Positions 3,167-62,697 of a stretch of DNA of 64,000 nt are shown here, piece by piece. Source of the DNA: Ruditapes philippinarum (Eukaryota); assembly GCF_026571515.1 (NCBI RefSeq), contig NW_026859247.1:1-64000 (forward strand). Reading direction: 5' to 3'. Positions within the stretch are counted from its first letter, which is position 1, and every line of letters begins with the position of its first letter. A program made the translations under genes and the position numbers. A model generated the notes under the pieces. That model saw nothing but the letters and a program-made list of their open reading frames with translations. It did no database searches and was not told the origin of the DNA.

Positions 3167-5860
3167 TCAGCCAATAATACTAGGCTCGTTCAAACTGAAA
3201 GATAAACAAATGATCTCATTAAAACGCAATAACATTCTACAGATATTCAGTCATATTTTTATTTAATCTTAAGTTGATCTAAATCGGCAGAAAAAATATA
3301 ACATTAAGAGAACCATAGCCTTAACAGATTTCTTACATCGACTTACTGAGGCTCTTAAAACGGAAGGAAATGCGGATTTGTGTCATTCTTAACCCGAGTT
3401 ATTGGTCCAAGAAATATCAAACTGTATATCAATATATGAGCCGCGTCATGACAAAACCAACATAATGGGTTTGCGACCAGCATGGATCCAGACCAGCCTG
3501 CGCATCCGCGCAGTCTGATCAGGATCCATACTGTTCGCTATCAGTTTCTCTACTTGTAATAGGGTTGGTAAGCGAACAGCATGGATCCTGATCAGACTGC
3601 GCGGATGCGCAGGCTGGTCTGGATCCATGCTGGTAGCAAACCCATTATGTTGGTCTTGTCGTGACGCGGCTCATATAGAAAGTTCAGTCCCTTTATGACA
3701 AAGTCTCACAGCTAAGCCCCCAAAAGGTGACGATGAAGGTAATAGAAGTTATAACACATCCGTACCTCTGTTCACAAATGAAAAATGATTTTCGGTCACA
3801 GTGATAATCGTGCCATGTGTATGATTCATGACCCCAAAGGCATGCGCAGTCTTGGTTATTTTTATCACTCGTTTCTGGTTGCCCTGGATACCAATTGGTA
3901 TAACCATTGGAGAGGAGTGTGCGGTCAGTATACCATACCCATATTCCTTCAATCTCTCCATCTGTTGCACCCAGCCAAAACCAGTTGTCTCTTTTGGTGG
4001 CTGTTGTTATGAAAAATATTAAATTGCACTAGGATATGTTATTTTAAAGGGACAAATATATCTGATGTGTTTCATGAAACTAAATAAAACTCAAAATGAA
4101 TTTATATGCGACCATATATAGTTCCTCACACTTAATCACAGTTTCGTTATATAGTTCTGGTACTTCTGGATCATTCTCATTACTGGTTCAAATTCTAAGT
4201 GGTTAAGATTTCAAACACTGCATAAAAGACACAAAGAATGATTCACTTTACATTTCCTCACATGAACTGACTGAATCAATCGAAAATGTAAAGCTCGGGA
4301 AATTGCTTGTCTTGTCATTGGTCTCGGAGACTCTTTTCCATCCAGAATTTATAGATACTGTAATACTGTTTCACTGATTAAAGAAGGTTCCAACACTAAA
4401 TATATCCAGACAAGTGATTAAACAATGAATAAAGTCATTAACAATACAGACAAAATAAGATATTCTACTGGTAAAGAAGTAACATATGATTTGAGGCCTA
4501 CGAAATTATACACACACCACGTGTGATTTTCTAACTATCATAGAGACTGTCAAGCCATCACAAAACAATAGTCGGACGACAGTTGTCTGTCCTATCTATC
4601 ACTTTAATATAATAAGAACCTCTGCGATGTGTTCAATTCTTAATATATCTATCGTGTAAGTCATGAAAGAGTATACTTAACCGTCTTTAAACAATCGCTT
4701 GCTGTGGTTTTGAAGAAATGAAAATTCATCTGGGTTTTCAATTGTCACCACATGCGAACCACCATAAGATGCACAAGTTTGCTGAAATAGTATATGCAAA
4801 CTTGTTCCGAGTTTGTAAGGACAAGTATGATACAATACAATCTGGATTTAAAATTGACAAGATGTTTTGATCATTGACGCCATCACTATTAAGTGTTAAT
4901 AATTGAGTACCTCAAGCTGGTGCTAGAGGCGTGAGGGATGTTGCACATTATCATTATTCCTCATGTACAGACTCAATCAAACCGAGTCTGTGATTTCATG
5001 TAATTTTGTTGTGTTAAATGCTTCCGAGGGAACACACTTTATACAGATTTTTAATGTTTCTCACTAAATGACAAAATCATACATTCTAGATTCAACGTTT
5101 AACTTACAGGAATGCATGTATTCATCATTCTGTTCAAACAATTCATACGGGAATATTTCAGTACAAATATATCAAATGATGAAATACATAGAACAAAAAT
5201 GCAATAGGCGATTGTTAGACTATTAAAGGGTATATTTTTATAACTGTCAGGAACTTAACAAAACTGTTCTTTCTTCTGAAGTCATTGCATTCGTAAAATA
5301 TTATAAAGAGTTTGTTTTTCATGTTAATATGTGTATATCACTCATAAATTTGATGATTAGTTGAAAAAATCTTTAATTTCTTGATTGGTGTAACATAATG
5401 AGTATTTTTTAAAATATTGTTAGCTTTCCCAAATACAAATAACTACAAAAGCATAGATACACTGCTGAGTGTATATCTATCTTACTAATTATTTGAAACG
5501 TACCGTTGCTTCTGTCCAGTTAAGTTGATGGTCTTCGTCAAATAGATAGCAAGATTCTTCGAATGTTATCCACCCATTTTCACAACATGCACCTGTGTTT
5601 TTGATAAAACTGAGATAATGGCAAGCCTTTTTACAACTCATTGAACTTTTAATTTCTCTTTTTTAAAATAAATACACGCAATAGACGGAATTTGAAATTT
5701 TGCTATTTAGGTGCTACTGATCTAAAATTAAGTAAGTTTTTAAAACAAACAACATATTTCATTTAATAAGATAGCTTTGAAAATAATCTAATTTACCCAC
5801 GAAAATCCTACACTGTACAAGAATATATGCAATTATTGTATACAAATAAAGTACTTTCAT
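3167..5860 (-). CDS. C-type lectin (perlucin-like) paralog 1, intact; exons 5860-5797, 5592-5504, 4781-4682, 4000-3766, 3194-3167
   Basis: Spliced product: MKVLYLYTIIAYILVQCRIFVG-ACCENGWITFEESCYLF..WTEAT-QTCASYGGSHVVTIENPDEFSFL..-FWLGATDGEIEGIWVW..YTNWYPGQPE..NQDCACLW..WHDYHCDRKSFFICE-QSLNEPSIIG*. All introns are GT-AG with phases 1,0,1,2. Confidence 0.9.
3433..3677. mobile_element. ~245-bp palindromic MITE in the last intron of lectin 1
   Basis: Near-perfect ~100-bp terminal inverted repeats (tatatgagccgcgtcatgacaaaacc... / ...ggtcttgtcgtgacgcggctcatata) with TA-rich ends; non-coding. Confidence 0.9.
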
Positions 5861-7359
5861 TGTACAAACTAAATGATCATACCAAAATGCTCTAATCATT
5901 TAATAAACTTTGACATCTATCGCAAACTTGACACTAGTCGTACAAAGATAAGAAACAGTTCTAATATGTCGTTATTTAAGCCTATTTCTACGCTAGAGTG
6001 TACAATATTGGAATACATATTGACGAGGACAAAGTTATAAAATACCATATTGTAAGAGCATTCAAATAATGCTTTAAAGAGCTTAAACCATTCCGTATCC
6101 CGTTTCAATGCTGGAAAAGCAAAGTTAACCAACATAATTATTTGATTAATTATCTCATTTATTGGCCTTCTTAGAAGAGTGATCGTTCCTGAAATGAGGA
6201 CTAGAAAGGCACCGAGACCTTCATCCGTAGTCGCCATATGACATTATACAATATAAAACACGTTTGCTTAATTTTTATTAATGGGAAAAGTTAACAGGTT
6301 TTTTCAGTTACCTGCCCAATGAACATACACGTTCCTCTAATATTGTTAATGAGGGTATGAGGGTGACCCTTTCAGAAACATAAACGAAGTGACAGGAAGG
6401 CGGAAACTGTTTAAATTAATCATTTATAGCGCAAATACATGTTTATTCATAGCGCAGATATAATAGCCAATAAAATATCTTTGGAAAGTAGAATAGGAAA
6501 AAAAGAATCCCTAAGAACGTCCAAAACGACAGAATTGAGGAAAAAAATAGTGCAGACTTGGTTTTAACTGAGTCTGATCATAGAGGGTACTAAAAAATGC
6601 AAGCTACCGTCTACGCCCCCTAGGCAAAATTTTAACATTAAAGCATAAAAATGTGTTCAAACTTTAGTTAAAATGGCACCTGCAAGTAGACAAATTCGTC
6701 TTTTGCCACGAAAAGCAGCGTTTGGAAGTTTTTTGCCCTTACTGAGAACACAATGGGCGAAAATTTAAAAAAAATGAATTTTGCAAGGTCACTGTACATT
6801 CGCTATTTACAGGTAAAGGAAAACAATGAATAAACAAGTTTGAGACAGAAAATTAGTTCATAAGATTAGTACGCTAAAAGAAACAAAAAATAAGATATAA
6901 AGGGAACGTTAAAAGAAGTTTACTACACATTTCTATGTTAAAGCAACTATGTGTTGAATGATTCCGGTCACATTTAGATATTAATTGTCATATGGTATTG
7001 TAAACATAGCATTAACATGCCTAATACAGTATATTGTGATCGAAACCATTCATATAAAAATTATTTACTTATTGCAGTTCACAAACATGTTTAGCAAGTA
7101 TTACAAAAAAGGTTAATAAAATGCAACAAGGTGTTCAAAAATAAAAAAAAGATCATCAAGACTTGTAAGTAGCATTATAAAAAAAATATTTTATAAACAT
7201 GTACTATGGAATGATCATCTGCTATCTCTTTGGAAACATGTTCATTATTTAAATTATTTCTATTAAATATCATAAACAGTTTGTTAATGATACTTGTGAT
7301 TTTTTTTGCAGACAGACTACGCTCTGTTGTTATTAATTATTGGTCAGCAGCCATCAGTT

Positions 7360-9835
7360 CGCTGACACTGACTCGATGTGTGTGAGCTCAGCCCCTCTTG
7401 CCCGGAGCTCAGCATAAATAGTTTTACATCGCTGTCACTGAACAATGAGTGTGAGTGCAGCCCCTCTTGCCCGGAGCTCAGCTAAAATAGTTTTACATCG
7501 CTGTCACTGAACAATGTGTGTGAGTGCAGCCCCTCTTGCCAGGAGCTCAGCATAAATAGTTTTACATCGCTGTCACTGAACAATGTGTGTCAGTGCAGCC
7601 CCTCTTGCCCAGAGCTCAGCTTAAATGGTTTTACGTCACTGACACTGACTCGATGTGGATGAGTGCAGCCCCTCATGCCCGGAGCTCAACTAAAATGGTT
7701 TTACGTCACTGACACTGAACGGTGTGTGTGAGAGTAGCCCCTCTTGCCCGGAGCTCAGCTAAAATGGTTTTACATCACTGACACTGACTCGATGTGTGTG
7801 AGTGCAGCCCCTCTTACCCAGAGCTCAACTAAAATATTTTTACATCACTGACACTGACTCGATGTGTGTGAGTGCAGTCCCTCTTGCCCAGAGCTCAGCT
7901 AAAATAGTTTTACGTCACTGACACTGAACGATGTGTGTGAGTGCAGCCCCTCTTGCCCGGAGCTCAGCTAAAATAGTTTTACATCACTGACACTGACTCG
8001 ATGTGTGTGAGTGCAGCCCCTCTTGCCCAGAGCTCAGCTAAAATATTTTTACATCACCGACAATGACTCGATGTGAGTGAGTGCAGCCCCTCTTGCCCAG
8101 AGCTCAGCTAAAATAGTTTACATCACTGACACTGACTCGATATGTGTGAGTGCAGCCCTTCTTGCCCAGAGCTCAGCTAAAATAGTTTTACATCACTGAC
8201 ACTGAACGATGTGTGTGAGTGCAGCCCCTCTTGTCCGGAGCTCAGCTAAAATATTTTTACATCACTGACACTGACTCAATGTGTGTGAGTGCAGGCCCTC
8301 TTGCCCAGAACACAGCTAAAATAGTTTTACTTCTTTGACACTGAACAGTGTGTGTGAGTGCAGCCCCTCTTGTCCGGAGCTCAGCTAAAATGGTTTTACG
8401 TCAGAAACACTGAACGATGTGTGTGAGTGCAGCCCCTCTTGCCCGGAGCTCAGCTAAAATATTTTACATCACTGACACTAACTCGATGTGTGTGAGTGCA
8501 GCCCCTCTTGCCCAGAGCTCAGCTAAAATGGTTTTACGTCACTGACACTGACAATGTGTGTGAGTGCAGCCCCTCTTGCCCAGAGCTCAGCTTAATTATT
8601 TTTACATCATTGACACTGCACTGACTCGATGTGTTCGAGTGCAGCCCCGCTTGCCCAGAGCTCAGCTAAGATAGTTTTACATCACTGACACTGAACGATG
8701 GGTGTGAGTGCAGCCCCTCTTGCCCGGAGCTCAGCTAAAATAGTTTTACATCACTGACACTGAACGATGTGTGTGAGTGTGCAGCCCCTCTTGCCCGGAG
8801 CTCAGCTTAATTATTTTTTACATCACTGACACTGCACTGACTCGATGTGTGTGAGTGCAGCCCCTCATGCCCAGAGCTCAGCTAAAATAGTTTTACATCA
8901 CTGACACTGAACGATGTGTGTGAGTGCAGCCCCTCTTGCCCAGAGCTCAGCTTAATTATTTTTACATCACTGACACTGCACTGACTCGATGTGTGTGAGT
9001 GCAGCCCCTCTTGCCCGGAGCTCAGCTAAAATAGTTTTACATCACTGACACTGAACGATGTGTGTGTGTGCCACCCCTCTTGCCCAGAGCTCAGCTAAAA
9101 TAGTTTTACATCACTGACACTGAACGATGTGTGTGAGTGTAGCCCCTCTTGCCCAGAGCTCAGCTTAATTATTTTTACATCACTGACACTGCACTGACTC
9201 GATGTGTGTGAGTGCAGCCCCTCTTGCCCAGAGCTCAGCTTAATTATTTTTACATCACTGACACTGCACTGACTCGATGTGTGTGAGTGCAGCCCCTCTT
9301 GCCCAGAGCTCAGCTAAAATAGTTTTACATCACTGACACTGAACGATTTGTATAAAGGGTGCAGCCCCTCTTGCCCGGAGCTCAGCTAAAATAGTTTTAC
9401 ATCACTGACACTGAACGATGGGTGTGAGTGCAGCCCCTCTTGCCCAGAGCTCAGCTAAAATAGTTTTACATCACTGACACTGAACGATGTGTGTGAGTGC
9501 AGCCCCTCTTACCCGGAGCTCAGCTAAAATAGTTTTACATCACTGACACTGAACGATGGGTGTGAGTGCAGCCCCTTTGTCCGGAGCTCAGCTAAAATAG
9601 TTTTACATCACTGACACTGAACGATGGGTGTGAGTGCAGCCCCTCTTGCCCGGAGCTCAGCTAAAATAGTTTTTCATCACTGACACTGAACGATGGGTGT
9701 GAGTGAAGCCCCTCTTGCCCGGAGCTCAGCTCAAATAGTTTTACATCACTGACACTGAACACTGAACAATGGGTGTGAGTGCAGCCCCTCTTGCCCGGAG
9801 CTCAGCTAAAATATTTTTACATCACTGACACTGAA
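7360..9835. repeat. Tandem minisatellite, 69-bp unit (70- and 75-bp variants), ~35 copies
   Basis: Consensus gatgtgtgtgagtgcagcccctcttgcccggagctcagctaaaatagttttacatcactgacactgaac, repeated head-to-tail with no unique spacers. Confidence 0.95.
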
Positions 9836-10689
9836 TGGAATTAGTTTTACATCACACTTGTATAATATAACGAATTGATGGAAAATGACTAAAGTCTGGT
9901 GAGATTTGTGATTCAAAATAACTGGAGGGTTTGTATTCACTTGATAACCATTCTTACTAGTCCTGTAATTAATTTATTTCACTTTTAACCTTCATTATAT
10001 CTGAAATAAATACACATTTCTAATTTTAATTTCCATGAAAGATGTAAACCAAACACAGATAGTATATGTCGATTTAGATGTTAATGCATTTAAACGGATT
10101 AATTAGTAACAATTTGAAGGGAATTAAATATCCAATGAAATACTTATGCAAATAAAACATGCTTACAGAAACTAAAACTAAATTTGTCACATTATACTGT
10201 ATTTATGTCTTAAATGGTTTTTCCTTTCAAAAAGACGAAAAAAAAACCCACAAACATAGTTATAGTGGTGCAAAAGCATGTAAGTTATGGCGGGAAAAAT
10301 GTGTCTAACACCGATGCTTCTATTTCACTGCACCTTCATGTACAGTTACAATATGGCTACTATGGATAGGAACATTCATGCTGAAAATTTAATTCATTGT
10401 TCCTAGAAATGTACACGAATTTTTGAAACTTTTGCTTCGGTGATTGAATAATAGAATAGTTTCCTTTGCATTGCACATACATTGACCTTTAAATTCTGAT
10501 TAATACTACGCGTTTTTGATATACCGTTTATTGTTGAAAATAATTTTCATTATATAGAATGTGAAGTGTCAAAATGATAGGTGTAAACTTTCAAATAAAT
10601 TTTTTCACTTTTATTTATTTGAACTACATTGTTGTCAACTCTTCAATATGTATTCTTAAGTAAAAATATATACTTTGTTTGTGTTTTAT

Positions 10690-32773: not shown

Positions 32774-33149
32774 ACCATGCTTACGTATTGTCTGCAAAAT
32801 ATTTTATTCCACCTTTGCTTATCACTGACAGCTCATTAATGTTAACAAAATCTGGTACACTCAAAAATCATTAATGACATTAGTGACGTATTTGCAGTAA
32901 ACTTCCCATTGTTGTCTGGTGTTAGTGGGTGGGTGGGGAGGTTCTTTTAAATAATAAGAAAACAAACGAAATATGAATGTCGCTTGGATTTTGTAATCAC
33001 CTAATTACAAAGCGATCACTTCGATGCAAAACTCAACGCATTCTAAAACTAATTAAAAAAATAGGCTTCTTATATTTCAACAAAGACGATAGAGATGTCT
33101 TTGAAGAAGATGATGATGATAGTGGCGGTGGTGAGATTGGTGTAGGTGG

Positions 33150-35990
33150 CGGTGGTGATGATGATTGTGGTATTGATAGTATTAACAGTGGTGGTGAGGA
33201 TGATACAGGTGGTTATAGAGGTGGTGATGATGATTGTGGTATTGATAGTATTAACAGTGGTGGTGATGATGATACAGGTGGTTATAGAGGTGGTGATGAT
33301 GATTGTGGTATTGATAGAATTAACAGTGGTGGTGATGATGATACAGGTGGTTATAGACGTGGTGATGATGATTGTGATATTGATAGAATTAACAGTGGTG
33401 ATGATGATACAGGTGGTTATAGAGGTGGTGATGATGATTGTGATATTGATAGAATTAACAGTGGTGGTGATGATGATACAGATGGCTATAGAGGTGGTGA
33501 TGATGATTGTGGTATTGATAGAATTAACAGTGGTGGTGATGATGATACAGGTGGTTATAGAGGTGGTGATGATGATTGTGGTATTGATAGAATTAACAGT
33601 GGTGGTGATGATGATACAGATGGCTATAGAGGTGGTGATGATGATTGTGATATTGATAGAAAATAACAGTGGTGGTGATGATGATACAGATGGCTATAGA
33701 GGTGGTGATGATGATTGTGATATTGATAGAATTAACAGTGGTGGTGATGATGATACAGGTGGTTATAGAGGTGGTGATGATGATTGTGGTATTGATAGAA
33801 TTAACAGTGGTGGTGATGATACAGGTGGTTATAGAGGTGGTGATGATGATTGTGATATTGATAGAATTAACAGTGGTGATGATGATACAGGTGGTTATAG
33901 AGGTGGTGGTGATGATTGTGGTATTGATAGAATTAACAGTGGTGATGATGATGATACAGGTGGTTATAGAGGTGGTGATGATGATTGTGGTATTGATAGA
34001 ATTAACAGTGGTGGTGATGATGATACAGATGGCTATAGAGGTGGTGATGATGATTGTGATATTGATAGAATTAACAGTGGTGGTGATGATGATACAGATG
34101 GCTATAGAGGTGGTGATGATGATTGTGATATTGATAGAATTAACAGTGGTGGTGATGATGATACAGGTGGTTATAGAGGTGGTGATGATGATTGTGGTAT
34201 TGATAGTATTAACAGTGGTGGTGATGATGATACAGGTGGTTATAGAGGTGGTGATGATGATTGTGATATTGATAGAATTAACAGTGGTGATGATGATACA
34301 GGTGGTTATAGAGGTGGTGATGATGATTGTGATATTGATAGAATTAACAGTGGTGGTGATGATACAGGTGGTTATAGAGGTGGTGATGATGATTGTGATA
34401 TTGATAGAATTAACAGTGGTGATGATGATACAGGTGGTTATAGAGGTGGTGATGATGATTGTGGTATTGATAGAATTAACAGTGGTGATGATGATGATAC
34501 AGGTGGTTATAGAGGTGGTGATGATGATTGTGGTATTGATAGAATTAACAGTGGTGGTGATGATGATACAGGTGGTTATAGAGGTGGTGATGATAATTGT
34601 GGTATTGATAGAATTAACAGTGGTGGTGATGATGATACAGGTGGTTATAGAGGTGGTGATGATGATTGTGGTATTGATAGAATTAACAGTGGTGGTGATG
34701 ATGATACAGGTGGTTATAGACGTGGTGATGATGATTGTGATATTGATAGAATGAACAGTGGTGGTGATGATGATCAGGTGGTTATAGAGGTGGTGATGAT
34801 GATTGTGATATTGATAGAATTAACAGTGGTGGTGATGATGATACAGATGGCTATTGGAGGTGGTGATGATGATTGTGGTATTGATAGAATTAACAGTGGT
34901 GGTGATGATGATACAGATGGCTATAGAGGTGGTGATGATGATTGTGATATTGATAGAATTAACAGTGGTGGTGATGATGATACAGATGGCTATAGAGGTG
35001 GTGATGATGATTGTGGTATTGATAGAATTAACAGTGGTGGTGATGATGATACAGGTGGTTATAGAGGTGGTGATGATGATTGTGATATTGATAGAATTAA
35101 CAGTGGTGGTGATGATGATACAGATGGCTATAGAGGTGGTGATGATGATTGTGATATTGATAGAATGAACAGTGGTGGTGATGATGATACAGGTGGTTAT
35201 AGAGGTGGTGATGATGATTGTGATATTGATAGAATTAACAGTGGTGGTGATGATGATACAGGTGGTTATAGAGGTGGTGATGATGATTGTGGTATTGATA
35301 GAATTAACAGTGGTGGTGATGATGATACAGGTGGTTATAGAGGTGGTGATGATGATTGTGATATTGATAGAATTAACAGTGGTGGTGATGATGATACAGA
35401 TGGCTATAGATGTGGTGATGATGATGATTGTGGTATTGATAGAATTAACAGTGGTGGTGATGATGATACAGGTGGTTATAGAGGTGGTGATGATGATTGT
35501 GGTATTGATAGAATTAACAGTGGTGGTGATGATGATACAGATGGCTATAGAGGTGGTGATGATGATTGTGGTAATGATAGAATTAACAGTGGTGGTGATG
35601 ATGATACAGATGGCTATAGAGGTGGTGATGATGATTGTGATATTGATAGAATTAACAGTGGTGGTGATGATGATACAGATGGCTATAGAGGTGGTGATGA
35701 TGATTGTGGTATTGATAGAATTAACAGTGGTGGTGATGATACAGGTGGCTATAGAGGTGGTGATGATGATTGTGATATTGATAGAATTAACAGTGGTGAT
35801 GATGATGATACAGATGGCTATAGAGGTGGTGATGATGATTGTGATATTGATAGAATTAACAGTGGTGGTGATGATGATACAGGTGGTTATAGAGGTGGTG
35901 ATGATGATTGTGGTATTGATAGAATTAACAGTGGTGATGATGATGATGATGAAACAGGTGGTTATAGAGGTGGTGATGATGATTGTGCTG
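33150..35990. repeat. Tandem minisatellite, 69-bp unit built from GGT/GAT triplets, ~41 copies
   Basis: Unit ggtggtgatgatgattgtggtattgatagaattaacagtggtggtgatgatgatacaggtggttataga; it translates as GGDDDCGIDRINSGGDDDTGGYR in one frame. Confidence 0.95.
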
Positions 35991-36372
35991 GTAATGGTGG
36001 TTGTGAAAGTAATTTGGCGGTGAAAGTGGTGATCGTAGTTCGTATTTTTACCTTTCAGCTGTTCCACTACTAAGGCGTAACTGTGGAGGCTTTGAAATAA
36101 CCGTTTTGTTCAAAAAGAAAGGTAAAGGCACAAGGTGGGGGTATTTAGCATGAATTTACCACCTTATATAAATTTACAAAGAATTTGTTTGGCTTAAAGT
36201 CAGATTCCCCGTTTTTTTGCGGGGTATGTTAATTGAGCATAAAACAAGATTAATGAAAGAAAGACGGTCATGATAACCGTATATAAGTCTTCTAAATTCT
36301 CATGTTTAAGTGTACAAATTGATGCTATGTTTAAATAGTTTGAAACATTATAAGCTTCAAAAGTTTTCATTT

Positions 36373-41609: not shown

Positions 41610-44600
41610 TTACTTATAAATATCTTCTTTGCTCTTTTGAAAGTGTTTAAATTCATCTCCAATGGCAATTTTCTTTTTGAGATTTTCTAGATTATTGATT
41701 CTGTCTTGGAATCCCGGCTTTCTTTCCCACTTCTCGTTTTCAATGATGATATCAATATGCTCTGCAACACTAAGTGGATTAGCCCTCAGAGCTATCTGGC
41801 TTAGCTGATTGCTACAATCGGCAATCTCCTTCATCAAGTTCAGCATGTCATTTTCCGCTTCATCCAATTCTTTCTTCAACTTGTTGACGATTCCTTCGTG
41901 TGATGTCACTTCAGCTTCTGCCTTTTTATATTTATTCATCATTTCGTCATACGTGCATTCTTCTTCCACTTCTTTCCATTCAATAATGAATGGCGTATTC
42001 TTATGTTTGTCCCAATAACAATGATCATCACATACCTTGCAATACCCATTTTCATTCATAGCAGTACACATTGCCTTATCTTCATCATTTTCATATATGC
42101 AGTTATCATGACAAGTAACATTGCAGTGAAGACAATTTGTAGTATGAAGCCCTTTTCTTAACGGTATAAGGTTTTGAACATGCTTTTTCCTTTTATATCT
42201 AAAATCTTTGTTATCAGTCATTTGCGTTTTAAATTTCTCAAGAATTGCAATTTCGGATCTGCACTCTTCCATTTTATTCAACCCCTTTTCTACCTGAGAC
42301 AGGAGAATTCCTGCAGTTTCTTCTATCTGCCGCCTCTTCTCTATCACTTCGGTTGATTGACTTAAACTCTTAGTTTTCATTGTTGACAATTTAAGCATGA
42401 ATGCATCGAAACTAGAAACATTCATATCAAAGAAAACTTTTGTAAGACTTGTTTGTGATGTCTTGATATTGTCCGAGAATATTTCTGATGTATTGAAGGG
42501 AAAATAAGTTTCATACGGCAAGTTTGCCTCTTTAAGAGCTGCCAGGACAGGAGGAGCTTTACCATCCGAGAATGTGACAATAGAGCATATGTTTTCCTGA
42601 ATATCTCGATGAAATAACGATGTGATTGTAGTATATATATACTCTTGTGTTATTGTCAAGCGGGATTCAGAAGCTCTCATGAATATACAAACTGCATCAA
42701 CAAATAGTACACCCTTTTCATCAACTGCAGAGAATAATTCTTTCAACTGGTCTTTTATTTCTGCATCTTTCTCTATGCCTTTATCACCAAATCCAGGTGT
42801 ATCGATTATAGTTAGCCTGAAGTCGACTTTACTGCCTTTTACCGGGACAACATTGTAGCATGTTATCCATTCTGTTTTTGGTAACCCTCCCTGGAAATGT
42901 AAGCATCGTTTATATAAGAATGTAATATGTTTGTGTTGGTTTCGTTATTAACATTTAGTGTTTCTGATTCATATAAAACTATACCTTTATTCACCGCAAA
43001 GAAGACTAATCATTTCAAAATCAATAAACTATGCAATGTTCACTAAAATTTACTTCACTTCTTTAATTATATTCTACTTTTGATAAAAATTTCTAATTTG
43101 AAAATTAAATACCATTGAAACAGGTACTTTTCCAAATGGTTCATTATCCTCTGCTGCTACGATAGAAAATCTGAAGTCGTCAGCAAATGTCACTCCAAAT
43201 AAATAGTTGATGAGCCCATTCACAAATGTTGTTTTTCCTGTCCCTGATGCTCCCAGTAGTAACACCGTTTTCTCTTTCTGGTGATGCGCCTTTTCTTCGC
43301 CTGTAATAAAGATTTTTGTATTTATAGGAAATAAGTGTTATAATAATAATTGTTAAGAAACCATATACAGAATAACAAAAGGAAGGAATTTAAAAAAAAT
43401 CGGGCTATTTTTTATCAAGACAGAAAAAAGTGATTAACTTTAATTGAATTTTATGCAATACTTTTACTGTCCGGTACTCTTTAGTATCTCTGAGTAAGTT
43501 CTACGGTTTCTATGATTTACTTTGAATAAAATACCTAATGTAAACTTTCTTGTCTTCAGTTGATGATTTTTCGCAGCTAAATTTTCATTCAGTCTAAATT
43601 TACGTAATTTCAGCTGATCTCCAATAGCAAAAACCTCTTCTGATAAATCGAAGACTAGTTCTGCAGCGGATGGAAGGGTTTCGATCGGATCACTGACTTC
43701 ACTGTAAGGGCCTTCTTCCTCGTTGTTGACAAGTCTTACTTGGAAGACAAAGCAGGAATGTGATTTTAAATTTCTCACGGTCAATGTTGTATGTTGCGGT
43801 TTATCTTCGTCATAGTATTGCCATTTTGCATCATGCTTATTTTCTTTGTACCTTATCTGATAACAGCTAGAATCTAGTGTATCTGTTGGTGCGCTCCATG
43901 TAATCGTTACACTGTCAACATTTAGAGCCCCGACTTGTTTTGGTTTTCCAGGTTTTGTCTTGATATAAAAAGTATAAAACAATTGCCAAATAAAACAGCA
44001 AATTCAAATATGTTCTAAATATTAATGAGACAACTGCATGAAAATTAAAAGCTTTTCAATTTTTATCAAATTTGTTCACACCAATTCAAAGTGGTTCTAA
44101 TAGCAACAATGAATATTGTATGTATAATTATCAGAGCGCAAGTGGCATGGGCATGTCTTAAGTATGTCATTTTTCTGAAAACGTCATTTGCGCTTAATTC
44201 TTTAATAATAGTCATGTACTGTTTGATAAAGATCGGTTTGATTTTGTGGTTTTGATGAACTTATTGCAATGGAATTTACCGACAACATGTGAAGTTGATA
44301 TCTGTATTGTCAATTTAAACTAAAAATCCGAATATATATATTTGTCCTGCAATGTATCTTATGTTTAGATTGTTACAAAATGACATCTTACATTTGGAGT
44401 AATTTCTTCTTTGACTTCTTCTTTTATCGGCTCCTCACTTCTGTACAGGAAAGATTATTTTGCATATTATTAAAACGACACTAAATTCATTGCTACCAGA
44501 TAGTTTGGTGATTGCAAGCCTACAAAATGCACATTATCAAAATGACTCTTGTAGGCGGCTCCGGGACGATTCAATTTTTACAAAACTTAGAGGGAAAATG

Positions 44601-46450
44601 TCAAATAGCTATTTTGCAGAGTTTAAAAATAAATCTACTTTATTTTAATGATACTAATAAAACATACATATCTTTCTTCAATCAGTGGCATTTCGCATTT
44701 ACTCAAAAGAGAGATGGTAACCCCAATTTTATTTCAATCAAATTATTTCAAATTTCATTCTTTTTAATCATGAGAAGTTTTTAACTTTTTCTTTCCTGCC
44801 CTTACTGTACAAATATTGCAATAATGACAAAAACGTCACTAAGTTCATGTGGTTAGCTTTAATCATAATTAATTAACTAACTTGTTTTTGTCATTGTTTT
44901 CTTTTTCCGGAGACTGTTTGTCTTCGTTTCGGCTCATAATCTTGTGAAACTTTTGAACATCGTCTATCATATGTTGATTATGACAGCTTTCACACAACGT
45001 TTTAAGGCAATCAAAGCAAAATGCAACAACCGGACTCTGTGTACCTAAACCTTGACATAATTGGCAAATATCATTGTTGACTTGTTTAATGCCTGTTATT
45101 TCTGGTTCTGGTTCGAAGCTTCTGTAAAGCGTGAAATGAAAAAAAAAATCAACAAAATATATTTTGATATCTAGTTTAACCCAGATTCATTCTGTTTCAA
45201 CAATATTTAAATAATTTGTTTTCCATAACTTAAAACTACTCAAATACTTGAAAAATAGTGAATTCATACTTCATGTAAGTGTTGAACATTAGATTTGAAC
45301 TTTTTCTTCTCTCTTGGTACTTACATTTTGGATTCTGCTATATCATCCGTCATAGAATCATGATCTGGATTTTCATCATTAAAAATCAATCGATGTTTGT
45401 TTGTTTCGTCTAGTAACATGTGTTCATCTACGCATGTAGAACAGAGCTTTTTGTTACAGTCTAAACAAGTGCCTGTGGGAATTTCATTTTCATTTGAAAC
45501 GCAACAACCGCATAATTCGGGGGCATCTGTATTGCTTATTTCATCAGGGATGGACTCACTCGAACTGCTTTTAGGAGTTTCACTGAAATGAATGTAGTAT
45601 AAATAGGAAATTCGACAAAGAAAAAGGTGTTATAGTAAATACATCTAATTCGAAGTTTAAATGTAAGAAGTCATTATACATGTACATACACTTTATCTGC
45701 TTGTGATTCGTCACCATTTCCTGTGTCCGATGAATAGATTAAACGATGGGATTTTCCTTCGGCAGATTGTTTGTGATCGTTTGCACAGGAGTCGCATAAG
45801 GTTTGTCTGCAGCTGAAACAAAACCAAAATGACTGATCAAGAGGGGTTAGTCTGCTGTCTTCGTTGCAGCGGTCACAGTATGTCCCTCTTGCCGAGGATG
45901 TCCGACCTGTTTCTATGCGGGGAGACGCTTTGCTTGTATCTTGCTGATTTTCAATCTGGTGCGCCCTGGTAGCTTTTTGAGATCTATGAGCCTTTGTGCA
46001 GTCAAAACACAGTACTTCATCACACGTGACACACATGGCCGAGGACGGTCGATCTTCATCTCCATTATAGCTACATGCCTCGCACACACAACGCTTGTTT
46101 TCCACATCAAGCGTGGTTATTTCGTGACTCCGTGTTGCCTTTTGGGATTTATGTATTCGTGCGCAATTTTCGCAGTAAAATTCAATACATTCCTCACACC
46201 TTGCTACTGCTTCGACTGACACTCCGTTTTCCAAGCATGGTTCACAATATTTAGACAGTGACACATTGTTGTCAAGAAACTCCTCAATATCTGTCAGCTT
46301 ATGATTCCTCGTTGCCTTTTGTGCCTTGTGAGCAGCAGAACAATTCTCGCAGTATGATTCTTCACAATCAGTACAATGTTGTTTTGCATCAACTGTTACA
46401 TTTCGTCCATTAATACATGGTTCACAATATCTTGAAATATTTTCAGACAT
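41610..46450 (-). CDS. Multidomain protein, ~1,060 aa: 6x B-box-like zinc finger + FN3 + septin/AIG1-like TRAFAC GTPase + helical/coiled-coil region with Cys/His-rich insert; exons 46450-45690, 45582-45325, 45121-44882, 44440-44392, 43958-43535, 43300-43113 (or -43128), 42890-41610
   Basis: B-boxes follow C-x2-C-x(10-14)-C-x2-C-x4-C-x2-C-x3-H-x8-H. FN3: TKPGKP..SVTITWSAP..YQIRYK..LTVRNLKSHSCFVFQVR..EGPYSEVS. GTPase motifs: G1 GASGTGKT, G3 DTPG, G4-like TFSD. Insert: NCLHCNVTCHDNC..CKVCDDHCYWDKH. All introns are GT-AG, and phases 2,2,2,0,1,0 join into one open frame. Confidence 0.88.
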
Positions 46451-61063: not shown

Positions 61064-62697
61064 TCAACCGATAATTTCAGTTTCAGGGTGGATTTGTCTT
61101 AATAAGAACCCAGAAAAAATACTGTATCCATTACCCCAGAGGCTTTCAGCCTTTGCTTCTCTACCAACAACCGACACATCGTCCCCTTTATTTAGTTCGT
61201 AAATGACAGTAAGAGATCCAGTGACACCGCGAAGATACATAGAATTGGATATGGTCCCATTTCTTCTTATAGAATAGTCTCCGGTAGTTGTATCATGGTA
61301 TGTCATCAAAGATACTGAAAATACGTAAATGCCGCGCACAGGTGCTCTAAAGTCTCCCGCGTGTGGGTTGTAGCTATTTCCTACGTTTGTGACGACGTTT
61401 TCAAAAATAATGACTTGATTGACTCCAGTATTGACGTAATGATTTTTAAGAGAGGCGGAGAATGCAACTACTGCCTCGATCTGATTTTGAAGCATTCTAT
61501 AACTTCTTCCATGTAGAATATATAGTACTTATCATAACAACTAAAAAAGATAATAAAAATCTTATTAACAGATTATAATAAAAGCAAAATCTAGTAAAAA
61601 AAATAATTTCCTTGTTTTATTAAACGAACTATATGTAGTAGATTTAAAATGGCATAGATTTATTTTACAATTAAATTTTGATCGTTTTTTTATGTTTTAT
61701 CCGAATCAAGTACAATAAATCAATCACGAGCACCTCAATTCCAGAGTATTTATTTGGATAAATATTAAAAACGTTATATTTAAATGACTATTGAATATCA
61801 AAACAAAATGGTGGACGTTTTATTTTGTTTGTTTGTATTATTAAACGTAAAGAGTTTATACTGTATTGTATTAATATTTGTTTACACTTTAAAAATAATA
61901 AAGGTCGGTTTTAGCACTTTGCAATGTTTAGAGTTATACTTTGAGGTTGAGCTGTCTGATATATCAGAACATAATCATTGCCTATCGCATTGGCCAACAA
62001 ATCTTATCTCAGTTTATCAACCAACACCAGGTATATACATGAATGTTTTGACTTTTCAAGACTCTATATGATTTAATGTCATTTTTCCAAATGTATTCGA
62101 TCTAAAAAGTAATATAAACTAATTCAATTGAATAACATGCCCACCTTATATTTATGGTAATTATTGTCTATCTCTAAATTTTTGTCATTTGTACTTATCG
62201 AAAATAAATAATGATTTACCGAATGTGCGTTTTCGTCCTTTTCCCATCAAATGAGCTTGCGAATTCATTTCATTTGGTTTACTGATTATTTCTGTGACCA
62301 AGTCCAAATCATCATGACCAGGTCTCACCACATTTCGCTTAGTCACTGCATCATCTGAATTCACGTCTGTCGAATTCTTCTTTTGTTTCAAATTTGACTG
62401 TGGAATTGTGCATCGCTTTTCAAGTTCAGATAGCCTTTCCTCGCGTTGTTTGTCCCTTTTTTCAAGTTCAATTATGCGCTCCTTCAACAGCTGATTACGT
62501 TCATGCTCCTGTTTTGTTAGACTTTCTACAGCTTCCAACCGATCAACAAGTGTTCTGATCAAAGCATTTTCTTTCGAACTAGATCCTAAAAGTTCATTCT
62601 GCTTAGGTTCAAGCTTGTTTTGACGTGATGAGTGTTCAAAGCCGTTTGCATTGATCTGTTCTAAGCATGCACAGACTAGTACGAACAGGATAACCAT
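61064..62697 (-). CDS. Secreted C1q domain-containing protein (signal peptide + coiled coil + gC1q); exons 62697-62220 and ~61512-61064
   Basis: Exon 1 has the signal MVILFVLVCACLEQINA and a coiled coil (LVDRLEAVESLTKQEHERNQLLKERIIELEKR). Exon 2 is gC1q: VAFSASL..IIFENVVTNVGNSYNPHAGDFRAPVRGIYVF..YELNKGDDVSV..YSIFSGFLL. The canonical exon-2 AG acceptor is missing in this assembly, so functionality is uncertain. Confidence 0.8.

Follow-up and report, generated by a model that had tools for sequence, protein, structure and literature searches.

The stretch of DNA analyzed here, referred to as the window, comprises 64,000 nucleotides of the clam Ruditapes philippinarum (contig NW_026859247.1 of assembly GCF_026571515.1, positions 1 to 64,000) and is AT-rich eukaryotic DNA of ∼31% GC. 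On its minus strand, between positions 46450 and 41610, lie seven coding exons that read as one frame in a script-checked reconstruction and encode a predicted protein of 1,061 amino acids, composed of six B-box zinc fingers, an FN3 domain, a GTPase domain, and a long helical tail with a Cys/His cluster. On balance, we consider it probable that this is an intact gene for a soluble protein in which a dimerizing GTPase-stalk engine carries a B-box scaffold head, with a function most likely in cell-autonomous defense. The gene is not unique to the window; it is one member of a large, catalogued, and experimentally unstudied family, and the interest of the finding lies in that modular family and in the new tip of its stalk rather than in the single locus.

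Exon Structure and Continuity of the Gene

The coding sequence of 3,186 nucleotides (1,061 amino acids and a stop codon) is interrupted by six introns of 107–441 nucleotides, each of which begins with GT and ends with AG; the phases are compatible, and the exons contain zero stops. Exon 1 (45690–46450, minus strand, as are all exons) begins with the ATG at 46450, encodes B-boxes 1–4, and has a GTATGT donor at its end, in phase 2. It matches Pfam ANCHR-like_BBOX at 2.7e-24 in four stretches and zf-B_box at 3.3e-8, and the B-box matches of the next two exons are weaker. Exon 2 (45325–45582) encodes B-box 5, which displays the full eight-ligand pattern and matches ANCHR-like_BBOX (6.9e-4) and the Trim66 B-box (2.5e-3), both under the cut-off. 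Exon 3 (44882–45121) encodes B-box 6 (zf-B_box, 5.7e-5) and the start of a charged linker, which continues in exon 4 (44392–44440), a 49-nucleotide micro-exon of 16 codons that is acidic and lysine-rich. The FN3 domain (∼43692–43928; Pfam fn3, 1.9e-9) is encoded by exon 5 (43535–43958), together with a conserved linker ending in KTRKFTL. Exon 6 (43128–43300) contains strand β1 and the G1 motif of the P-loop, GASGTGKT (43230–43253), and exon 7 (41610–42890; 426 codons and the stop) supplies the switch I Thr, the G3 motif DTPG (42792–42803), the G4 motif TFSD (42564–42575), the coiled-coil stalk, the Cys/His apex, and the C-terminal helices. The original prediction had assembled a protein of ∼1,060 residues from eight pieces, namely, five open reading frame (ORF) fragments and three further exons; its length and domain order stand, with each domain confirmed by Pfam or by motif scripts, and the eight pieces are replaced by seven exons.

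Single exons were used as queries, with natural full-length homologues (P0004, P0044, and others) serving as proxies for the joined protein. Exon 5 is matched end to end by thirty paralogous exons in the clam genome, as is the last exon by its own paralogues, and the FN3 exon aligns with the FN3 domains of bivalve homologues. Exon 6 aligns with its counterpart, the P-loop exon, in the homologues and shares its boundary with the paralogue L002 and with the RefSeq model P0313; its donor is ambiguous, with 43128, 43122, and 43113 all in phase. The weakest exon of the model is exon 4, which homology does not support and which is retained because the frame between exons 3 and 5 needs it. At the 5′ end, an in-frame TAA stands 9 nucleotides upstream of the ATG, and the protein begins eight residues before B-box 1; therefore, no N-terminal RING finger can be gained by extending exon 1. 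Pfam finds no RING in exon 1, and the homologues also begin with B-boxes, in agreement with the RING-less protein that had been proposed. A search for a signal peptide or membrane segment found no sufficiently hydrophobic stretch anywhere in the protein, and a secreted or membrane-bound FN3 protein was therefore rejected.

The arrangement of the exons is repeated elsewhere in the genome. Searches with exons 7, 1, and 5 recovered the order B-box array, FN3 exon, GTPase exon at no fewer than 11 further loci, in each case on one strand and within a few kilobases (contigs C4460, twice; C44; C5197; C187; C7969; C1162; C1074, twice; C10762; C6896; and C3810), and contig C7502 holds a single B-box exon only. 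The search of mollusc proteins that the original prediction had proposed finds the B-box, FN3, and GTPase architecture automatically annotated as one protein in at least seven bivalve species. Named holders, of 950–1,300 residues, are Mercenaria mercenaria, Dreissena polymorpha, Mya arenaria, Saccostrea cucullata, Crassostrea virginica, and R. philippinarum itself. Full-length homologues align with all exons of the window gene in order, with the exception of the 16-codon linker exon 4. In addition, the architecture is found as complete ORFs of 947–1,150 amino acids on intron-free contigs (for example, 947 amino acids on 3,158 nucleotides, 1,001 on 3,882, and 966 on 3,308), which are too short for introns and are thus most simply explained as transcript assemblies.

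These comparisons bear on the alternative that two adjacent genes, a B-box-only gene (exons 1–4) and an FN3-GTPase gene (exons 5–7), happen to be readable as one frame. In its favor, the joining of the exons at this locus is derived from genomic sequence, the micro-exon at the end of the first half is the one that lacks homologues, and B-box-free FN3-GTPase proteins exist in the same genome, such as P0313 on contig C6127. However, at the conserved boundary the FN3 exon lacks its own start codon, all phases match, the order is kept at the other loci, and the complete architecture is contained in both single-protein models and intron-free contigs, from R. philippinarum as well as from other bivalves. 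We regard the two-gene alternative as highly improbable; judged from sequence, the fusion of B-boxes, FN3, and GTPase is not an accident of adjacency.

The B-box array is reminiscent of TRIM proteins. All six B-boxes are complete (C-x2-C...C-x2-C...C-x2-C...H...H), and their closest matches among Protein Data Bank (PDB) sequences are the MID1 B-box and TIF1-beta. Between B-box 6 and the FN3 domain, the end of exon 3 and exon 4 provide ∼40 charged, low-complexity residues, and the only long coiled coil lies downstream of the GTPase domain rather than after the B-boxes. The description of the protein as TRIM-like thus stands as regards the B-boxes and fails as regards the RING and the coiled coil that should follow them, two of the three features that define TRIM proteins, and a true TRIM was rejected on these grounds. 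The closest TRIM arrangement is that of class C-I (MID1 and TRIM9/67; RING, B-box, coiled coil, COS, FN3, SPRY), which shares B-boxes and a downstream FN3 domain with the clam protein; the clam protein differs in having no COS box in addition to the two missing features and in having six B-boxes rather than one or two. From the domains that are present, no E3 ligase activity would be expected. There is precedent for a B-box protein that ends in a GTPase in TRIM23, which combines an RBCC unit (RING plus B-box plus coiled coil) with an ARF GTPase domain; the clam GTPase is of the GIMAP/septin class and not of the ARF class. Similarly, RNF112/ZNF179 is a precedent for the fusion of a zinc finger to a GTPase, with a zinc-finger N terminus, a large GTPase, and a helical extension (Foldseek match 9jjx, 3.4e-5), but it has a RING in place of B-boxes, a GTPase of the GBP/atlastin-like class, and neither an FN3 domain nor a metal-binding apex.

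GTPase Domain, Stalk, and Cys/His Tip

The G1 motif, the switch I Thr, and the G3 and G4 motifs are all present in the clam GTPase domain. Between G3 and G4 runs a segment, AVC..(x)..SRLT..Q.YI, that is conserved across the family and that we read as a putative counterpart of the GIMAP conserved box. Exon 7 alone matches no Pfam family, and the AIG1 family is reached by neither exon 6 nor exon 7, the G domain being split between these two exons and the exons having been searched apart. Relatives are more informative. AIG1 scores of the B-box-bearing homologues are 21–31 bits against a cut-off of 27, with P0044 reaching 42, and 40 of 64 family members have an AIG1 match at or below 1e-5. The commonest Pfam match is Septin (62 of the 64), with scores close to its cut-off, but these matches stop at profile position ∼75–93 of 280 and cover only the first third of the model, which leaves the septin-unique element unmatched; a true septin was rejected for this reason. 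Compared with PDB sequences, the family profile matches septin-7, -2, and -3 at ∼3e-7 and Toc34 at 8e-5, over G1–G3 only, as well as the FN3 domain of titin, and a phmmer search of the same sequences with exon 7 returned nothing meaningful.

The fold was assessed on the relative P0044, and not on the window protein, by an AlphaFold (AF2) model with a pLDDT of 88.6 and a pTM of 0.86. The best Foldseek match of this model is GIMAP7 (3zjc, 1e-8), followed by Toc34 (3e-7) and GIMAP2, -5, and -1, and the GIMAP-like matches include 2xtp, 6z3e, and 3v70. VIA-align ranks Toc33 first (2j3e; Z 14.1, rmsd 3.8 over 197 residues), ahead of GIMAP7 (13.4), GIMAP4 (12.3), and septin (11.7). Together, the Pfam matches, the family profile, and the P0044 fold bear out the septin/AIG1-like assignment that had been made from the window alone; on sequence and on the P0044 model, the G domain is placed within the GIMAP/Toc/septin class and is a clean member of none of the three.

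The likenesses and differences are specific to each group. GIMAP/AIG1 proteins (PF04548; human GIMAP7, GIMAP2, and GIMAP5) share with the clam family the G1–G4 motifs, the xRLT segment, helices that follow the G domain, and a dimer predicted to form across the nucleotide site, and both groups expand in particular lineages. In contrast, GIMAPs have no B-box or FN3 domain, and their C terminus consists of a few short helices or a membrane anchor rather than a 50-residue hairpin with a Cys/His knob. Septins (PF00735) share the G3 sequence DTPGFGD and use the G interface, but their G4 motif is AKAD, compared with TFSD or TFAD in the clam family, which gives no evidence of an NC interface or of filaments. 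Toc33/Toc34 match the P0044 fold and are GTP-dependent homodimers; these are plant membrane-anchored receptors with no accessory domains in common with the clam family and with marginal sequence similarity.

GIMAP2 and GIMAP7, Toc34, and septins all pair across the nucleotide pocket, the G interface. When two copies of the P0044 G domain were modeled with GTP and Mg, a symmetric homodimer was predicted with an ipSAE of 0.36, compared with 0.03 for the best-scoring control of three. Runs had at least 89% of their contacts in common, with a partner pLDDT of at least 75. In a microbial calibration, 21 of 30 solved homodimers and 0 of 23 monomers attained this mark, as did 7 of 16 in animals. The predicted P0044 interface is formed by the P-loop (residues 71–73), the conserved-box region (180–184), G4 (214–219), and the G5 region (241–257). 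The polymerizing GTPase of the original prediction is thus supported by the models up to a G-interface homodimer, in the relative P0044, and no further.

The window copy has an unusual switch II. In positions 42780–42803 (minus strand), deletion of a single residue has eliminated the near-invariant Thr that comes after DTPGFGD, a Thr common to GIMAPs and to the rest of the clam family, and two nearby Arg residues are replaced by Lys. As a result, the window protein reads DTPGFGD-K-G where ∼320 family occurrences read DTPGFGD-T-x-G. The same change is found in P0166, which is 89% identical to the window protein without gaps. Under an alternative reading, the G domain would in this copy be a nucleotide-binding, hydrolysis-poor module, akin to a pseudo-GTPase-like lock, and the protein would serve as a static B-box scaffold instead of cycling as a switch. 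The departure from the T-x-G pattern, the Arg-to-Lys replacement in the GIxRD sequence that follows, and the retention of the change in P0166 speak for this reading. In contrast, G1, the switch I Thr, the Asp and Gly of G3, the Asp of G4, and the Arg of the conserved box (SRLT) are intact, and we consider a hydrolysis-poor module unlikely.

The GTPase domain is followed by a tail whose Cys/His cluster (42003–42134, minus strand) has the pattern C-x2-C-x3-C-H-x2-C...C...C-x2-C-x3-C-x-W-x2-H, that is, two C-x2-C-x3-C-(x3-4)-C/H half-sites and one extra Cys. Two such similar half-sites would fit two metal sites. In 78 aligned sequences, C114, C117, C121, C145, C148, C152, and H157 are invariant, and H122, C125, C136, and W154 are nearly so. 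The last 287 residues of the window protein itself, modeled with 78 relatives (pLDDT 87), are predicted to fold into an antiparallel hairpin of two ∼50-residue helices, a β-rich Cys/His domain at its tip (pLDDT 97–98), and three C-terminal helices, and the tip is accordingly described as a predicted metal-binding knob.

No solved structure matches the tail model in Foldseek at E ≤ 0.001, and a phmmer search of PDB sequences with the 88-residue Cys/His apex returned nothing meaningful. VIA-align returned generic antiparallel coiled coils only, at Z ≤ 12.1, a range in which the tool is uninformative for helical models. These include HP0958 and msmeg_4306, which we take to be coiled-coil proteins with zinc ribbons, and the arms of Rad50 and SMC proteins, and all are treated as analogies of shape only. 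Look-alikes of the tail identified with a language model (score 0.97, 225 of 256 shared features) belong to clusters in which 24–58% of the members are labeled DUF8206, and the tail, as judged by precomputed labels, is probably this Pfam family of unknown function (PF26633, Pfam 38.1).

Family Spread and Interchangeable N Termini

A HMMER search with exon 7 in a library of 1.84 billion proteins yielded 2,699 related clusters at 50% identity, of which 905 scored below 1e-30 over the whole length of exon 7. These matches, together with the retention of all invariant Cys and His residues, place the window gene in a family whose members share the FN3-GTPase-tail unit. In nearly all of the 150 proteins listed (250–3,261 residues), the module is C-terminal, the exceptions being a few proteins with tandem GTPase modules, and in many members an FN3 domain lies upstream of the G domain. 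Members are found in bivalves, teleosts (si:ch73-170d6.2 in a loach), the toad Bombina, the coral Porites, and other animals. When 185,579 prokaryotic genomes were scanned with the family alignment, only three weak matches to its N-terminal part were obtained and, within the limits of this test, no bacterial counterpart.

The regions N-terminal to this unit differ; the original prediction had called for a search for alternative N termini on the same GTPase. B-box arrays of four to eight units are seen in bivalves, both oysters and clams, and PARP12-type CCCH fingers in an oyster. Stonustoxin helical and thioredoxin domains are present in P0050 and P0113, which come from metagenomes or assemblies, and, according to precomputed Pfam labels, in P0338 of Bombina bombina; in stonustoxin itself, a PRY/SPRY domain follows the helical and thioredoxin domains. 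In other members, the N-terminal part is a kinase domain, a SAM domain, 26 consecutive FN3 domains, or additional copies of the GTPase. Across the sequences compared, the constant unit is FN3-GTPase-tail, and the B-box array is one of several interchangeable N termini.

None of these proteins carries the name of a characterized family. The homologues are called “uncharacterized” or are automatically labeled “Septin-type” or “AIG1-type G domain-containing”, and a search of the literature turned up no paper in which the architecture, or any of the listed homologues, is described. A survey of AIG proteins in Biomphalaria gives 19 architectures and mentions none with a B-box or fibronectin domain, and a paper from the Aravind laboratory treats AIG GTPases and B-boxes as separate items among oyster expansions. 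The supposition that no named family has this architecture is therefore upheld, yet the architecture was already present in automatic bivalve annotation.

In the clam genome, the last exon has at least 34 matches, some with stop codons, and at least 30 paralogous loci can be recognized, of which at least 12, the window gene included, have B-box arrays. Tandem clusters of three to five members in both orientations occur on contigs C4460 (∼144–233 kb), C1074 (∼6–73 kb), and C187 (∼121–235 kb), and some of the clustered members have stop codons or split last exons. Tandem clusters with broken copies are as expected of birth-and-death evolution. At one B-box-free FN3-GTPase paralogue (L016; G000:C6127), a long microsatellite of the TGTATG type lies upstream (positions 5470–6174 of the locus, ∼32.8–33.5 kb of the contig) and translates as repeated CMYV. 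The paralogue on C6127 shows 100% identity over 417 residues to the RefSeq protein of R. philippinarum for LOC132750457.

The presence of broken copies raises the question of whether the window gene, intact as it looks, is a silent or decaying, unexpressed member of such a birth-and-death family. Stop codons in several paralogues are consistent with such decay, and no public protein model identical to the locus was found in a search whose length and word limits may have missed one. However, seven exons with canonical splice sites are open over 3.2 kb, every invariant family residue of the tail is retained, and relative to P0166 only conservative changes are seen. A silent gene is, on this evidence, very unlikely.

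Proposed Mechanism, Neighboring Features, and Significance

A mechanism can be proposed for the favored reading, an intact gene for a GTPase-stalk protein with a B-box head. The G domain would bind GTP and pair with a second copy across the nucleotide pocket. Dimerization would then position the two stalks, with the predicted metal-binding tips projecting away from the dimer, and the six B-boxes would supply partner binding or higher-order clustering. In this way, the nucleotide state could be coupled to the assembly of a larger scaffold. Assembly through the B-boxes was part of the original prediction and is carried here as an inference.

The setting of this mechanism is most likely cell-autonomous defense or conflict, as suggested only by the evolution of the family. 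Expansion, clustering, domain shuffling, and pseudogenes make up a birth-and-death pattern, which is usual for defense genes and thus constitutes circumstantial evidence for a defense role. The same molecule could instead have a housekeeping role as a nucleotide-regulated scaffold of the cytoskeleton, of membrane trafficking, or of an organelle, as do septins, Toc GTPases, MID1, and TRIM9. The closest folds include septins and Toc33/34, the PDB matches of the B-boxes are MID1 and TIF1-beta, and the window copy is both old, at no more than 49% identity to its paralogues, and well conserved, with an 89% identical relative aligning to it without gaps. On the other hand, housekeeping scaffolds rarely form sets of at least 30 divergent paralogues in which pseudogenes, tandem clusters, and exchanged N termini occur, and the PARP12-type CCCH and stonustoxin-type domains that have been swapped in are typical of defense proteins. 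A role outside defense is, in our judgment, rather unlikely.

Several observations count against the favored reading of an intact, dimerizing defense GTPase. The seven-exon model of the locus was derived from genomic sequence rather than from transcripts, and both the micro-exon 4 and the donor of exon 6 follow from the logic of that sequence. The altered switch II could change or weaken hydrolysis. The dimer was modeled on a relative that is ∼35% identical and may reflect the memory that the prediction method has of GIMAP, septin, and Toc dimers. Finally, the nearest paralogues are only 49% identical to the window copy, which is thus old and lies outside any recent burst.

A broader reading is also possible, which we put forward tentatively and regard as doubtful. 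An unrecognized class of animal defense GTPases with lineage-specific heads may have as its common engine the FN3-GTPase-stalk and its metal-binding tip, and the tip may be a new zinc or iron-sulfur fold that contacts a target or a membrane. As heads, bivalves would carry B-box arrays, oysters PARP12-type RNA-binding fingers, and fish and amphibians stonustoxin/perforin-associated domains. If true, this class would form a modular system whose logic resembles that of TRIMs or NLRs.

The remainder of the window contains a few further features. A minisatellite of 41 copies of a 69-bp unit (94% matches) occupies positions 33151–35987 and has a G-rich plus strand, with a GC skew of up to 0.81. Its period equals 23 codons, so that long ORFs stay open across it, such as that at 33146–36073 on the plus strand (975 amino acids). 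A 143-amino acid ORF at 61064–61495 on the minus strand encodes a complete C1q domain (Pfam 4.9e-20) and probably belongs, as an exon, to one of the numerous C1q-domain genes of bivalves. Positions 8001–10000 form an island of higher GC content (0.465, compared with ∼0.31 around it) that holds no ORF of 70 or more amino acids.

GIMAP/AIG1-type GTPases have repeatedly been tied to immunity in vertebrates, plants, snails, and corals, and their mode of action is poorly understood. The family described here displays a modular logic, in which a constant GTPase-stalk engine is combined with many interchangeable heads, and its stalk ends in a structurally new tip with about ten conserved predicted metal ligands. 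Were the role to be one of housekeeping, the interest would be confined to the new fold and architecture. Family members are present in teleosts and in a toad, and therefore a function found in clams or oysters could be tested in zebrafish. The Manila clam is farmed and suffers from Vibrio and Perkinsus disease, and the family adds at least 30 further loci of a probable defense repertoire in this animal.

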